Shown here in pieces: positions 26,285 through 34,600 of a DNA stretch of 64,000 nt. Both the position numbers and the translations under genes were made by a program. Origin of the DNA: Paramoeba atlantica (taxonomy: Eukaryota; Protista; Discosea); assembly GCA_977017575.1 (NCBI GenBank), contig CDRNVI010000190.1, forward strand, positions 1 through 64,000. Reading direction: 5' to 3'. Position 1 is the stretch's first letter, and every line of letters starts with the position of its first letter. The notes below the pieces were generated by a model. The model did not search any database. It had not been told where the DNA came from and worked only from the letters and a program-made list of their open reading frames with translations.

Positions 26285-29200
26285 TTAATAATTCCCGAGA
26301 TGAACACGACCAGAATCAGAACCAGATGTCCCCACAACTCTTCCATTTGTTGAGATGACAGCTGTGTTTCTTCTCTTCTGATAGAGTTCAATCTCTTTTT
26401 TGAAGTCTGTTTCGTTCAGTTGTGAGTTTTTGTAACAAGTATCACAAACGCGTAATGGGTTGAGAAAGCTGCAGTTTGACGGGTCCATTGGAACAGGTCC
26501 ATTTGCAGGGACAAATTGCCATAAGATTGCCTTTTTTTTTATTAAGGTAAGAAGAAAAGAAAAAACAGATCAAAAAATGATAGAAAATTCTTTACCGTGT
26601 TGCTTGAACATGAATCACAAACAACAGCTCCACATCCTCTGCAATGATGCCGCCAAACGAAAAAAGAAAAGGCTGTTGTACAGACACCACAATTCGCAAA
26701 ATCTGCATCCAGTTTCCACGTTGGAGGAGAGACCAGCAATGTGCTTAGGGCAGAGACAGGAACACGTTTCTTTGGTTCTCCAGTGGAAGCAGGGTTAGAA
26801 GGATTTTTTTGTTGTGTGAAGAGGGTTTGTTTCAAAGCTGGTTGTTGGGTGGTGGATGAAGCTGGGGTTGAGGGGGTTGCTGGAGTTGCTGAGGTTGTTT
26901 TCGATGTTGGGGTTGGGGTTGTTGGGGTTATTTTTGTTGTTGGTGCACTGGTCGAACTGGCTGGAGTTGCTGAGGTTGTTGAACTGGCTGTTGGAGTTGG
27001 GTTGGTTGGGGTGGTTGAAGCGATTTTTGGTTGTTTTTGTTGTTGTTGGTCTTGTCCACCATCTCCTGGTCCAGGAGCTGGTGTTTTCTGTGGTTCTGCT
27101 TTCCGTGGAGGCACAACCCTTTTTTGGGGGGGTGCGTCTCCACTCCCAAAAATTGAGTCATCATCTTGATTTGATTCAAAGGGGAGAGAAGATGATTGTG
27201 TGAATTTCTTTTTTTGAGAGGTGGAGGAAGGGGTTGAAGGAGAAGATGAAGATGTTGTAGATGATGTACTTGTTGTAGGGGAAGGAGTTTTTGTTGATGA
27301 TGTCGAAGTTGTTGTTGTTTGGGTATTTGGTTGTGGTGAAGATGTTTGTGATGATGTTTTCTGTGGCTCACTCTTGCGAACCACAGGTTTTTTCTTAGCA
27401 GGTGCATCCCCGCCTCCAAAAATTGAATCATCATCTTCATTCCCTTCGAAAGGGAGAGAAGTTGCTTGTGTAAATTTCTTTTTTTGGGAGGCGGAAGAAG
27501 TTGAAGGAGTTGTTGAAGTTGAAGTGGTCGACGTTGAAGAAGATACGGGAGATTGTTTTGTAGTAGCAGGTGGCTTTGGTAATTGCCCTCTTTTAGGAGT
27601 ACTTTTCTGTGGTGGAGCTGAACCTCCAAAGATATCATCATCAGCTTTATTTGTCTCGAAAGGCAGTTTTGTTGAGGAAGAGGAAGTTGGTGAGGCTGTT
27701 GACGAAGTTGTTGATGAGGTTGCTGAGGGTTTTGAAGTTGGCTGTGTGGAGGGAGACACAATATCAGAACCCTTCGGTTTGGTTCGGCTCGGAGGTTGGC
27801 GTCCTGCTCGAACTGGGCGTGACTTGGTCACATGTTCTAATTTTGGTGCCTTTGCCGAAGCTTCCACATCTGTCATGGGAGCGCTCGATTCAGTTTTGCT
27901 TGTTGGAGGAGCTCCACTGGAGCTCAGTGAATCACCAATTGTGCCACCTAACTGATTCACTAAATTGCTCACCTTGCTTCCACCAACTTTCTTTGGTGCT
28001 GGTGCTTTAGTTTCAGTTTGTGGTGGCTCTTCTTTCTTCGTTTCAGGCTGAGGGGCAGGGTCTTTTTTTGGGACTGAGGAAGAGGGAGAAGAGGTTGAAA
28101 CTGTCGAGGCAGAGGAGGGATTTTTTGATTTTTCAATTATCTCTAAGAGAGCGATAAAAGTTTCGTCGACATTATCACCAGTAAAGGCAGAAGCTTCCTT
28201 GAAAGGACACCCCGTTTTCTACAGGACAAAATTATGAACACTCGAAAAAGATAGAATTTGATCAACAATTTTCTGAGGTATTGAAAAGAACCTTTGCAAA
28301 GGCAGCGAGATCAGCGTTTGTGACAGTGCGATCTGCTACTTTATCCAACTTATTCCCAACAATGATCATTGGAAGTGAATCTGAAAAAAAAATTGTTAAA
28401 AGTCCAGTAACAGACACAACCAAAATAACAGAAGCAAACCTTCCGAGCGAAGTTGATAAATAGAACGAATATCAAAAGGGAGATCTTCAAAACTCTCAGA
28501 AGATGTTAAATCACAAACACAAATATACCCTGATGCTCCTTTCATGTAATCAACAGATAACTGTTCCAGAAAAAACTCAGACCAAGCAAGCAAGATTCAT
28601 TATTATTATTCAATCTTCCATTGATCAATCAAAACAAATTCTTCTTCATTGATTGTCAATAAAGAGAAGAATAAGAGAAAAATACTCAACTGAACTCAAT
28701 CTTGGGCGAGTGTCATCTGGATGGATGTCGAAAACCTCAACTTCGAGACTTCTATCTGCGGAAATCATCAACAAAATAAATCAAAAAAAGAATATAAAGC
28801 ATTTCATTTTGATGGCAAACCTCCAACCAAGACTGATCTGAGGTAAATTTTAGAAGAAGGAGAGGTTTCACAGAAATGGCTTTCACAAAAACGAGTCGTC
28901 AAGGCAGATTTTCCAGCGTCTGAAAAAGAAAGGGTGTTAAATCGTCTGGTTGCCAGAAGAGAAAAGATAGGAAACCTCTTGCTCCAAGTAGGACAATTTT
29001 GTAACTTGCATCAGCTAATGCACTTCGAACAGCATTTTGAATCACATCACTACCATCACCATCAAAAGACATACCGGCTCCCCCACTCTCACTCCCAATT
29101 TGGCCTTCCGTTGAGCCCCAATTTGTTGTTGACATTGTTGTTGTTGGAGGAGGAGATAAAGATAAATCTTCCATTCCACCATGTGAGCTTCCTCCATCAC

Positions 29201-30102
29201 TTGCTCCTCCACTCATTCCATAGTACGACGAATCCCCATAAGAAGTTGTCGAAGAAGAATAACCAGTTCCACTATTACCCCACATATTCCCACCAGAAAG
29301 CATGCTACTACTCGAAGTACTGGCACCCCATGCATTTCCGGTGTTACCCCAACCCCCAGAACCACCACCACCACCACCACTACTGTAACTATCTCCTCCA
29401 AGACCAAGACCACTCCCACTATTACTACTCCCACCCCAATTTGTTGTTCCTGAATATCCACCCTGAGTCTCAGTTGTTCCTCCCCAACCACTTGAAGATG
29501 AAGTGGTTGCACCCCACTGGGAAATTGAAGAAGAACCTCCTCCTCCTCCACCTCCACCCATGAGATTGAATCCAGTTTGGACTGTGTCTGGGTGTGCATT
29601 TGCAAAGTTCATTCCTTGCTGAACTGTGAGTGAGAGAAAAAGAATGAGATTGGCCAATTATTTTTCAAGAAAGTTGGAGTAGCGAAATCAAACCAAGTTC
29701 TGGGTTTTGTTGGGCAAATTCAGCCCCTTGTTGGATGGTTTCTTTATTTTCGTAAGCAAACTGGGCTCCTTGTTGGAGTGTTTCTCGATTTTCGTAAGCA
29801 AATTCAGCCCCTTGTTGGACAGTTTCTCGATTTTCATAAGCATATTCTGCTCCCTAAAAAAGACAAACCATTCATTCAAAAAAAAGAATCAACTCCAAAC
29901 CAAAATCAAAAGAAAAAACACAAACAGCTTGGATCGTATCCCGATTTTCATAAGCAAACATCGCAGCATCCTTCGCCGTTTCACGATGTTCATAAGCAAA
30001 GTCAGCAGTCTTTTTCCCAGCAGAAGCAACAGCATCTTTATTTTCCCACAATTTCGAGCCAGCACCACCTACAACATCATCCCAATCATCTCCACCAAAC
30101 AT
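26285..30102 (-). CDS. Multidomain protein: N-terminal DDW + 14-aa repeats, Ser/Gly linker, atypical Ras-like domain, CPI motif, acidic LFa-like repeats, C-terminal FYVE
   Basis: Spliced reading YKIVLLGAR|DAGKSALTTRF, VEVFDIHP, YMKGASGYICVCDLT, IIVGNKLD and FKEASAFTGDNVDETF runs in frame into the 26542-27972 ORF. FYVE is WKLD..C..C..FSFFVWRHHCRGCG.VVCDSCS...RVCDTC. Confidence 0.8.
29700..29850 (-). repeat. Coding 42-bp tandem repeat (14-aa unit AYENRETxQQGAxF)
   Basis: Three to four units in one exon, with degenerate units in the flanking exons. Confidence 0.85.
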
Positions 30103-30355
30103 CTTCTTTGCGTTGCGTGAAGACAAACAACAAACAAAAAAAGAAACCCAAAACGCGAAAAAAACCCAAAACGCGAAAGAAATCCACCTTTTTTTTACTC
30201 CTTATTTTTAACGCCCTAAAATAATAGATCACTATTTTTATAGAGATCTAAATTAGCTTTTTTCGCTCTTTCGCCCTTTTCCTTTTTCTTTTGTCTTTCT
30301 TGTTTTTTCTTGTTGTTTTTCTTTTTTGGAAACCAAAAAAAACGATCACAAAAAG

Positions 30356-31690: not shown

Positions 31691-34600
31691 TCAGTTTGGA
31701 TTAAAAGACTCATCAAACTCATAATCAGATGAGAGTGGCAGAGGAGTTGTTCCCTTTCGAAAATCTTTAAAGCAACTTTCTTTTGGTTCTTTTGTGAATA
31801 AGGGACCAGATGGGTCAAACTCAGTGGTTATTTTCAACACAGTGACACATTCCTTGAAAAGTGGAAGAGAAGAGAATTAATTAAAAAAAAGAAAAGGAAA
31901 GAAACAAAAAAAAAATAGAAAAAAAGAAGTAAAAACCGTTTTTTTCTCAAGAACTTGTTGCAAATGTTTTGGTGCTTCACGAGGACCATAGGCTAACAAA
32001 AAATGGGCTGCCTCATTCCTCTCCGTCTTTTCATTCCATTTCACATACGAAATAACAATTTTCCCGAAATTTCTCTCACTAAAACGAATTAAAAAGGTGC
32101 CTCTTTCTTCGTAAGACAGGAGGAGGTCCGCTTCTTTTCGAGTGATAAATCCGAGGACAAGACCTTTCATCCAAAGAGAATGAAAGGGCAATTGATGGCG
32201 AATACGACGACATGCTAATCCAAACCAATTCCAAAAATCATCATAATCTTCTTTACTGATCTTCTTCTTATTTTGAAATCGAGTTTTGGCCAAAAAATTC
32301 AAATCGTTAATCGAAAGAGGGCGTTCTGGCTTGACCATATCTTGTCTTGTTGAACGAATAAAATGGGATTGAATGAGATTCGCAAGATGTTCGAATGTGA
32401 TTTTATCCTTATCGAAAGCCTTGATCTTCATTAATAATCCCTCAGAATCACCCCATTGACTTTCATTTGTAATCACCACAAAAGGAGCAGAGGGAGGGCT
32501 TCGAATGGAGACTAAAGTTCCGTACTTATCCTCTGTCATAAATCGAACACGAACGGTAAAAAATAAATGAGCAATATTCAAACGAGTAGGTTTCGCGAAC
32601 TTCAAATCATAAAATGTTGCAAATCCCTCTTCGTCAAGAGATCGTTCCCCAGCAACAAAAACTTCCTCTCCTTTCTTTGAATCTTCTGAAACAACTTCTG
32701 CTGTCACTTTTGACTCCGTTGAATAGCATACCTTTCAAAAAAAAAAGGAAGTGAGTGATGATCAGAACACTCCTGAAAATTTAAAAAAACACACATCCAC
32801 ACACAGATAAAAAGAGGAAAAGAAACCTTGGAAGCAGTCAACAGTCGAACAAGGGTTGGTTCTTCATGCTCTCCATCCGCACCAGAAACTGTTGTCCCTA
32901 AAATTTTGCGAGTTAAGATTTTTTGAAAGAAAGAGAGAAGGAATTATTTTTTGTGTTATGTTAAAAGAGGGGATAAAAGTTCTAAAAAGCAAACCTTTCT
33001 TGATCGGCTTAGGAAAAGGCTGTTTGGCTATCACAAGCTTGGCAATACAATGAACATCAGTAGATCGTTTCTTTAAATGATCTAACTCTAATTCATACAG
33101 CTCTAATTGCTCCAATTCCAAGCGAAGATCTCTTTCAAGACAATTTGCTTCTTGAATGGTAAAAGGCATCAAAATGGATGACCTCAACAACGACGAACAT
33201 TTGTTTAAACAATCGCTGATGTATGAACGAGCCTTTGAATGCATTGCTACTAGCTTCATTGAATCATTTTTTCCAATCCTCGGATTCACTGGTGTTTGTT
33301 TTTGTTTTGTTCGAAGATCAGACATAAAAGGTTTGATCACTTCATTGTAGCTTTTGTACAACTCATTTAAGTCATAGACAGCGCTTGGTAAAATTTTCCA
33401 GTGATGATGTTGGGGAAAATAATAGGGGTTTTGAGTTTGACTTGAAGAAGAAGAAGAAGAAGAAGATGCTGATGATGATGATGGCGAAGGGGAAGGAGAT
33501 GGGATAGGAGAATGTAACATTGTCCCTCCCCCGTTTGGAATTTGAACAGAACGTCCATGATCTGTTGGAGAAGCGGAATACATGGAAGTGGAGGATCTTG
33601 TTGGGTATCTATTTTGCTGGACTGGATTACTTGTTGTCCCAGAAGATGTTGATGTGTTTGGGGTGGTAACTGAGACAGGAACTGACGTGAGAGTGAGAGT
33701 TGGGGGAGGTGGAGCTTGTGATAGGGACTGCGAGCTGTTTGAAGGGAGAGGTGAACGAAAGGTTGTGGATTTAGGCTGCTGGGATGTTCCTTCTTTTGCG
33801 GCTAAAGCAGCAGCTCTTGTCATCGGTCGCGAAAAAGGACTTTGATATAAAATTATTTAGTCTCAAAAAAAAAAAAAGACAATACAAAAAGAAAAAGAAA
33901 TAACATTGAATAAACAAGTAAAAAAAAGAAAAAAAAACTTGTCTCGAAGAGCGGACCGATCCTCTTGGTCCTCTTTCTTAACGGTTTCTTGGTCTAACTT
34001 CAACTTTTCCTTTCCTGCTCCATAGGATGTTTGCGGCTGAAAAGAACCTTCATCAACCTGGAGAGAGGATGGGGAAGCAGTAATCGAAGGGGAGGCAGAG
34101 AGGGATAACTCCGAATTTTCCAAGTTCATGAGCTGAGAAGAAGTTAAGACAATACCGGGTGGAACGCCACTCTTCATCTGTTCGAGAAACGCTTGCCATT
34201 CCTGCGGAGGGGGAGCATTCCAGCCATCGCTCAATGTGAGAGCACCACCACTTGTTGTTAAAGCAGGAGAATTTGAACTTGTTCGTAAAAAGTCGGAAAA
34301 ATCGATATTTCTTGAGGGTGATAATTTGTCTTCTACAAAAAGAAGATGAACACAAAAAAGAACGGGATTAAAAGAACAAAAAAAAAACAGAAAAATCAGA
34401 AAAGAAGGGGAGAAAAGAGAGAGAGAGAGAGAAAATTTCATACGTGGAGTTTGTGGTGGATTTAAACTTTCCCCATCAGATCCTTCAAAGCCTGTTTTTG
34501 TATGAAGTTCAGTCAGCCAGACTTGCCAAACTTGTCCCCTTCTTATCATCTCTCTCCCCCTTCTTTTTCCACACACACACACAAAACACCTTTGTTAAAG

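Follow-up and report, generated by a model that had tools for sequence, protein, structure and literature searches.

The gene described here is located on the minus strand, at 26285..30102, in a 64,000-nucleotide stretch of Paramoeba atlantica DNA (GenBank assembly GCA_977017575.1, contig CDRNVI010000190.1, positions 1 to 64,000), which is called the window below. Its predicted protein contains, from the N-terminus to the C-terminus, a divergent Ras/Rab-like domain, a capping-protein-interaction (CPI)-like motif, three acidic Phe repeats, and a FYVE zinc finger. This combination suggests a scaffold for actin capping protein that is anchored to phosphatidylinositol 3-phosphate (PI3P). The features that bear on this suggestion are the following; amino acid (aa) positions refer to the predicted protein.

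26285..30102, minus strand: the whole coding region (start at 30102, stop at 26285; 9 exons in a GT..AG model, 1075 aa)
30102-29926, 29853-29694, 29623-28976, 28919-28821, and 28755-28691, minus strand: exons 1-5
28560-28440, 28380-28292, 28218-26596, and 26530-26285 (stop included), minus strand: exons 6-9
28126..29006, minus strand: the divergent Ras/Rab-like domain (aa 319-484, over exons 3-8)
28985-28906, minus strand: its G1 motif GARDAGKS, split by an intron
28732-28712, minus strand: its switch II site FDIHPDD
28354-28343, minus strand: its G4 motif NKLD
28191-28183, minus strand: its G5 motif SAF
26737..28125, minus strand: a Ser/Thr/Pro-rich tail, probably disordered (aa 485-947, ~460 aa), which carries the short motifs
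27790..27840, minus strand: the CPI-like motif LEHVTKSRPVRAGRQPP (aa 580-596, from a pattern scan)
27628..27666, minus strand: acidic Phe repeat 1, LPFETNKADDDIF (aa 638-650), with D-I-F after the acidic run
27418..27456, minus strand: acidic Phe repeat 2, LPFEGNEDDDSIF (aa 708-720), part of a conserved ~32-aa unit
27148..27186, minus strand: acidic Phe repeat 3, LPFESNQDDDSIF (aa 798-810)
26429..26736, minus strand: the FYVE zinc finger (aa 948-1028; WKLD, WRHHCRGCG, and RVCDTCY), cut by the last intron at 26595-26531

An earlier note on this DNA had read the region as one protein with an upstream Ras-like domain, a CPI motif matching the consensus, three LPF-(acidic)-IF repeats, and a FYVE finger with WxxD, RHHCR, and RVC, in an architecture that it did not recognize. 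All of these elements were found again, and a six-frame regular-expression scan placed the motifs within a few bases of the positions given there. The Ras-like domain shows GARDAGKS, NKLD, and SAF together with colinear Ras/Rab matches, the CPI motif is weakly CARMIL-like in two library searches and has Val in place of one Lys, the constraint on the repeats is supported by Paramoeba aestuarina, and the FYVE finger is EEA1-like.

The reading frame of the nine-exon model is 3228 nt long (1075 codons) with no in-frame stop. The eight predicted introns are all GT..AG introns of 56-130 nt, and their donors are mostly GTTTG. In exon 8 (28218-26596), one open frame connects the G5/alpha5 segment that ends the Ras-like domain with the CPI-like motif, the three repeats, and, in its N-terminal half, the FYVE finger. 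Thus, the fusion architecture is independent of the splice model. In exon 3, also in one open frame, the Gly/Ser-rich region continues into the beginning of the P-loop strand. Across exons 3-8, over which the Ras-like fold is spread, Pfam and PDB searches by exon piece gave colinear matches. Near the N-terminus, tandem repeats keep an exact period of 14 aa over predicted introns 1 and 2, which supports the splice sites of these introns. The exon 8/9 junction (...CSSNT/AILWQFVP...) is read through by the transcript-derived orthologue from P. aestuarina. As predicted from the sequence, the locus is a single gene encoding a protein of ~1075 aa, in agreement with the earlier reading.

The read runs that cover the locus contain no RNA splice-junction evidence, and the protein collections contain no annotated protein from the source genome. 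Both observations would fit a gene-model artefact, in which at least two separate genes are joined or exons 1-2 lie outside the transcript. Such an artefact is, however, very improbable. Exons 8 and 3 each physically link neighbouring modules, the Ras-like fold extends over exons 3-8, the register of the 14-aa repeats is continuous over introns 1 and 2, and the gene for eIF2-alpha begins ~220 bp upstream on the opposite strand. Three runs holding most of the locus are DNA contigs with the introns retained. One possible RNA run holds only a contig of 171 nt (27697-27867), which includes the CPI-like motif and lies entirely within exon 8. DNA runs that carry the same species label differ by single bases at 27707, 28107, 28109, and 28347, presumably through strain or allelic variation.

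The N-terminal half of the FYVE finger alone, at the end of exon 8, matches Pfam PF01363 with 44.7 bits against a cutoff of 27.8 (E=1.4e-11). The P. aestuarina orthologue matches Pfam FYVE with 69.7 bits (E=2.3e-19, profile 1-64). The closest solved FYVE structures are those of EEA1, RUFY1, Hrs, and Vps27, with EEA1 as the top match in the PDB search with the orthologue. The Paramoeba finger resembles EEA1-type FYVE fingers in WxxD, RHHCR, RVC, and the Cys pattern. It differs from them in having Trp for the first Arg of RRHHCR, an unusually hydrophobic loop before RHHCR (FSFFVW), and an insertion of ~10 residues before RVC. PI3P binding by this finger is likely but not certain. Docking of the C-terminal finger on PI3P membranes, to which the EEA1-like signature and the hydrophobic FSFFVW loop point, can be predicted with some confidence.

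The tail between the Ras-like domain and the FYVE finger has a composition of 51% Ser, Thr, and Pro. Its hydrophobic residues are few and clustered in motifs, and the sole His of its 460 aa falls inside the CPI-like motif. The CPI consensus is LxHxTxxRPK(x)6P (PMC10381072; PMC5491179), and six of the seven fixed positions are present (L580, H582, T584, R587, P588, and P596). The pattern L.H.T..RP.{7}P occurs once in the window by a six-frame regular-expression scan, as LEHVTKSRPVRAGRQPP at 27840-27790 on the minus strand. The chance expectation of this pattern is 0.0017 per six-frame window, or ~0.07 per proteome of 5 million residues. A 47-aa piece (27885-27745) was used as the query against all PDB sequences and Pfam. 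The PDB search gave five matches with E<=10, and all of them are capping-protein-binding chains of CARMIL1 (LRRC16A): 3lk2_T (E=0.018), 3lk3, 3aa0, 2kz7, and 9ec0. In this search, CARMIL1 KLEHvTKsRPvRagrQpP is aligned with KLEHFTKLRPKRNKKQQP. The sole Pfam match is CARMIL_C at profile 200-227, which is its CPI region (E=0.0013, 18.9 bits against a cutoff of 25).

A small hydrophobic patch, KVSNLVNQLGGTIGDSL, at 27990-27940 on the minus strand (approximately aa 536-552), precedes the CPI motif by ~30 aa in otherwise polar surroundings. A WH2-like reading of this patch was rejected as too weak; the first half is WH2-like, but the LKKV-type basic end is missing.

The three repeat units read [ST]-L-P-F-E-x-N-x-(x)-D-D-D-(S)-I-F-G (n=3). 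The FAM21 leucine-phenylalanine-acidic (LFa) motif is L-F-[D/E]3-10-L-F, in which I, V, or M is allowed and Ser is common in the acidic run (PMC3374753). The VPS35 consensus is [L/I]F-[E/D]3-9-[L/I]F, and the FERM pocket of SNX27 takes acidic-D-[L/I]-F (10.1101/2023.08.15.553351). The acidic run and the second hydrophobic pair of the repeats match LFa, while the first pair is broken by Pro. Repeat 1 shows the aDLF pattern (10.1101/2023.08.15.553351). Readings of the repeats as clathrin-box, NPF, DPF, FxDxF, or gamma-ear motifs were rejected on inspection, as the patterns misfit.

Repeat 3 and its P. aestuarina counterpart, SLPFETNEDDDDLFG, are identical at 11 of 15 residues (73%), compared with 16 of 34 (47%) in the N-terminal half of the FYVE finger and 25-29% in the flanking tail. 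LPFE.N.DDD.IF is the best-conserved element in the comparison with the P. aestuarina fragment, which holds a second copy (...EDNDLF). Repeats 2 and 3 share a core of ~32 aa, QKKKFTQ..SLPFE.N.DDDSIFG.GDAP. Over 51 codons they show nine synonymous codon differences, all in the first 32 codons, that is, in the core, where amino acid changes are few. Therefore, they are not simply recent copies of each other. These comparisons indicate that the acidic Phe repeat is a real short linear motif under constraint.

Retromer is considered as the partner of these repeats by analogy with FAM21, not as a result. Taken to its full extent, as in the earlier note, the analogy would make the protein a functional stand-in for the FAM21 tail in its lineage: the acidic Phe repeats of the Paramoeba protein would bind retromer VPS35/VPS29, and the protein would link capping protein to retromer domains independently of the WASH complex. 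A CPI motif and acidic [LI]F repeats in one disordered tail are indeed FAM21-like (PMC3374753; 10.1101/2023.08.15.553351), and exact acidic-D-[IL]-F is present in repeat 1 and in the P. aestuarina copies. However, the FAM21 head is missing, there are only three repeats with the first hydrophobic pair split, and the majority of FAM21 repeats show weak or no retromer binding in solution. Nothing indicates that the source genome is without WASH or FAM21. A stand-in of this kind is improbable. The likeness to FAM21 stands at the level of motifs and does not extend to the head, the number of repeats, or the first L-P-F pair.

In the Ras-like domain, the G1, G4, and G5 motifs are intact, with GxxxxGK[ST], NKxD, and SAx all satisfied. 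Pfam Ras (PF00071) is matched by three exon pieces, at profile 11-28, 66-93, and 105-132. The PDB matches, from four exon pieces, are colinear: Rap1A 15-31, KRas 70-102 and Rab12 75-107, EhRabX3/Rap2A 109-135, and Sec4 137-165. By-eye alignment to Ras numbering places the Arg and Asp of the P-loop GARDAGKS at the equivalents of Gly12 and Gly13. At switch II, DTAGQE is replaced by FDIHPDD, which has neither the DxxG glycine nor the catalytic Gln. In Ras, changes at Gly12, Gly13, and DxxG-Q abolish both intrinsic hydrolysis and hydrolysis stimulated by GTPase-activating proteins. Because R and D occupy the G12/G13 positions and DIHP is present in place of DxxG, a normal GTPase on/off cycle is unlikely. 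The proposal that the protein is gated by its GTPase is thus not borne out. From these residues, the domain is probably a constitutively loaded GTPase or a pseudo-GTPase, serving as a non-switching interaction module.

A different explanation places the Ras-like domain at the centre. In this case, the protein would be a PI3P-anchored divergent Ras/Rab-like GTPase, whose tail is a hypervariable linker that has expanded and whose FYVE finger takes the place of the prenyl anchor. The CPI match would be fortuitous, and the acidic Phe motifs would bind something that has no connection with actin or retromer, for example adaptor ears or a protein specific to the lineage. Ras-family GTPases have been repeatedly fused to PI3P modules (PMC5869587), and acidic [LI]F motifs are bound by several unrelated pockets (PMC3374753; 10.1101/2023.08.15.553351). 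The sub-threshold scores of the CPI matches to CARMIL also favour this explanation. On the other hand, a purely GTPase-centred function is not obvious for a GTPase without switch residues. The full CPI pattern is expected only ~0.07 times per proteome, yet it is found in a disordered tail beside a membrane anchor, as in known CPI proteins, and two libraries yielded only the capping-protein-binding region of CARMIL. The GTPase-centred explanation is less likely than the scaffold.

We prefer, with a probability of roughly 0.55, the explanation that the protein is anchored to PI3P and serves as a scaffold for actin capping protein on endosomes, phagosomes, or macropinosomes. The sequence demonstrates the architecture and the motif matches, and we infer from them every binding step that follows. 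With the FYVE finger docked on the membrane, the disordered tether would display the CARMIL-type CPI motif and recruit capping protein. The motif would then allosterically weaken the hold of capping protein on barbed ends or on V-1, as in other membrane-targeted CPI proteins. Such recruitment and allosteric modulation of capping protein on PI3P membranes through the CPI motif is somewhat more probable than its failure. The three acidic LPF...DDD-IF motifs may provide multivalent, low-affinity binding to an endosomal coat partner; this is the weakest step. By analogy with FAM21, the partner could be a site of the VPS35 type or a basic aDLF pocket of the FERM type, and multivalent binding to retromer specifically is doubtful. 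The Ras/Rab-like domain would act as a constitutive or pseudo-GTPase interaction module rather than as a timer, and the N-terminal 14-aa repeats and the xWG-containing Gly/Ser region may serve self-association.

Several observations weigh against the scaffold. The consensus Lys of the CPI motif (K589) is Val in the Paramoeba protein. The CARMIL matches are specific but sub-threshold in both libraries, and the comparison of the CPI motif is confined to P. atlantica, as the P. aestuarina fragment begins downstream of the motif. The repeats depart from the LFa rule in showing L-P-F instead of [L/I]F, and there are 3 of them against 21 in FAM21. A PDB search with one acidic repeat unit returned nothing meaningful. 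In the FYVE finger, the first Arg of RRHHCR is Trp in both Paramoeba species, and PI3P affinity may be altered for this reason. The support for the Ras fold is piecewise, each piece scoring 11-15 bits against the Pfam cutoff of 21.6. The silence of the read runs on splice junctions belongs here as well. Overall, the interpretation given in the earlier note is partly supported: one protein, the FYVE finger, the CPI-like motif, and constrained repeats are retained, while GTPase gating and a relationship to FAM21 beyond the motif level are not.

The sole relative found is a transcript fragment from P. aestuarina, UniRef A0A7S4NXQ6, whose 90% cluster has one member. An exhaustive search of 1.84 billion representative proteins gave 1546 matches, nearly all of them to the FYVE finger alone. 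A0A7S4NXQ6 was the only match aligning beyond the finger, and no other protein of the same layout was found among these representatives, which is consistent with the architecture having been unfamiliar at the outset. The word-based protein searches with exon 8, with its first 215 aa, and with the P. aestuarina fragment found no new relative; those with exon 8 and its first 215 aa were restricted to proteins of 0.55-1.75x the query length and were dominated by low-complexity words. Two metagenome scans did not find a relative, and an Atlas search with the P. aestuarina fragment gave generic FYVE clusters only. The protein is lineage-restricted and real.

CPI-motif proteins include CARMIL (LRRC16A), CD2AP, CIN85, CKIP-1, CapZIP, FAM21/WASHCAP, twinfilin, and Bsp1. 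They are otherwise unrelated, and each is targeted to membranes through its own domains (10.1101/2020.02.06.936211). The Paramoeba protein resembles CARMIL and the other CPI proteins in having the CPI motif in a disordered region and a membrane-targeting module of its own in the same protein. Unlike CARMIL, it has no leucine-rich repeat (LRR), pleckstrin homology (PH) domain, dimerization domain, or CARMIL-specific interaction (CSI) motif, and the Lys of RPK is replaced. LRR and PH were not found in the Pfam search of the exon pieces, and no EEFF-type CSI sequence is present in the translated model (the CSI of higher CARMILs is RxDEGxEEFFxKR). As the LRR/PH domains and the CSI motif are missing, an orthologue of CARMIL was rejected.

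The likeness to the FAM21/WASHC2 tail lies in a long disordered tail that carries acidic [L/I]F motifs in several copies besides a CPI motif. In the Paramoeba protein, however, the CPI motif precedes the repeats, a lipid anchor and a Ras-like domain are part of the same protein, and there is no WASH-binding head. Pfam searches of all exon pieces revealed no FAM21-related family, and the N-terminus consists of the 14-aa repeats, the Gly/Ser region, and the Ras-like domain. An orthologue of FAM21 was rejected because the head domain is missing.

FYVE-Rheb in Euglenozoa and PX-Rheb in Cryptista are Ras-family GTPases fused to PI3P modules (PMC5869587). The Paramoeba protein shares with them a Ras-family domain without a prenyl tail and a PI3P-binding module. 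In FYVE-Rheb and PX-Rheb, the module lies at the N-terminus, immediately next to a bona fide Rheb, whereas the Paramoeba FYVE finger is C-terminal and 460 aa away from a GTPase with a degenerate switch II. Rheb chains are not among the best PDB matches of any Ras-like exon piece. Rheb likewise has Arg where Ras has G12.

In a literature search, no eukaryotic FYVE-plus-CPI protein was found, and the only work on FYVE, CPI, and capping protein concerned Legionella MavH. The MavH effector of Legionella pneumophila recruits capping protein to endosomes and combines a PI3P-binding domain with a CPI motif (PMC10381072). The combination of a PI3P-binding domain and a CPI motif is thus a shared design principle. 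MavH differs in being a small bacterial protein with a WH2-like actin-binding helix, and its PI3P domain is not described as FYVE. There is no convincing WH2 in the Paramoeba protein. No homology between the two proteins is expected.

The remaining features of the gene and one of its neighbours are listed below.

30076..30096, minus strand: the acidic Trp motif GGDDWDD (aa 3-9; identified by sequence only)
29562..30006, minus strand: seven tandem 14-aa repeats, FAYENRETxQQGAx (aa 33-133; starting at aa 35, 49, 63, 77, 91, 105, and 119)
29061..29561, minus strand: the Gly/Ser-rich low-complexity region (aa 134-300)
26288..26428, minus strand: the C-terminal tail, with a short conserved stretch F/YxKxIxxYxKR
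31880-32707, minus strand: a neighbouring gene for a Dictyostelium-type STAT (STATa_Ig, EF-hand_12, and SH2 domains)

The protein begins with MFGGDDWDD. Acidic Trp motifs of this kind bind Arp2/3 in cortactin and WASP-family proteins. The CARMILs of amoebae have acidic regions that activate Arp2/3 (PMC5491179). GGDDWDD may be linked to the Arp2/3-binding acidic motifs, which is possible, but it is a single occurrence and could be due to chance. The 14-aa repeats have no match in Pfam, PDB, or Atlas. All seven Trp residues of the Gly/Ser-rich region occur as xWG, and several GY/SY are present as well. This region resembles GW/WG 'hook' or aromatic-sticker regions.

The gene for eIF2-alpha, with S1 and EIF_2_alpha domains, is divergent and separated from the start of the gene by ~220 bp (30103-30325). 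The gap is probably a bidirectional promoter shared by both genes, and its size leaves little room for a further upstream start. The STAT-type neighbour supports the assignment of the window to an amoebozoan host nucleus. The sole relative of the protein likewise comes from a Paramoeba species, P. aestuarina. In the host nuclear genome of Paramoeba, introns are abundant and 75% of them are 50-150 bp long, whereas its endosymbiont Perkinsela has no introns (PMC5601477). The sizes of the predicted introns (56-130 nt) agree with the host nuclear genome (PMC5601477). We take the window to be nuclear DNA of the amoeba host.

Judged from its sequence, the protein is a lineage-restricted variant within the membrane-targeted CPI-motif proteins; the kind is known, and the FYVE-addressed combination is new among the eukaryotic proteins in the literature searched. 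A wider interpretation, which is tentative, is that it may be a eukaryote's own PI3P-anchored recruiter of capping protein. A non-cycling Ras-like scaffold with FYVE, a CARMIL-type CPI motif, and FAM21-like repeats would then link endosomal or phagosomal PI3P domains and a sorting coat directly to the control of barbed ends, alongside the WASH complex. The protein would also be the first counterpart, on the side of the host, of the design that MavH uses in amoebae.

If the motifs are inert, the locus would represent one more case in which a Ras-family domain has given up its prenyl tail in favour of a module that binds PI3P. The place in the cell where capping protein is active is thought to be set by CPI-motif proteins, and each known family of them has a different membrane address. 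If the scaffold reading is true, a FYVE-addressed CPI protein would put the control of capping protein on the PI3P compartments of a phagocytic amoeba, an arrangement for which the only example so far is an amoeba-hijacking bacterial effector. It would also show how a new adaptor can be assembled by recombining short motifs, such as CPI and acidic Phe motifs, with a degenerate Ras domain and a lipid anchor.

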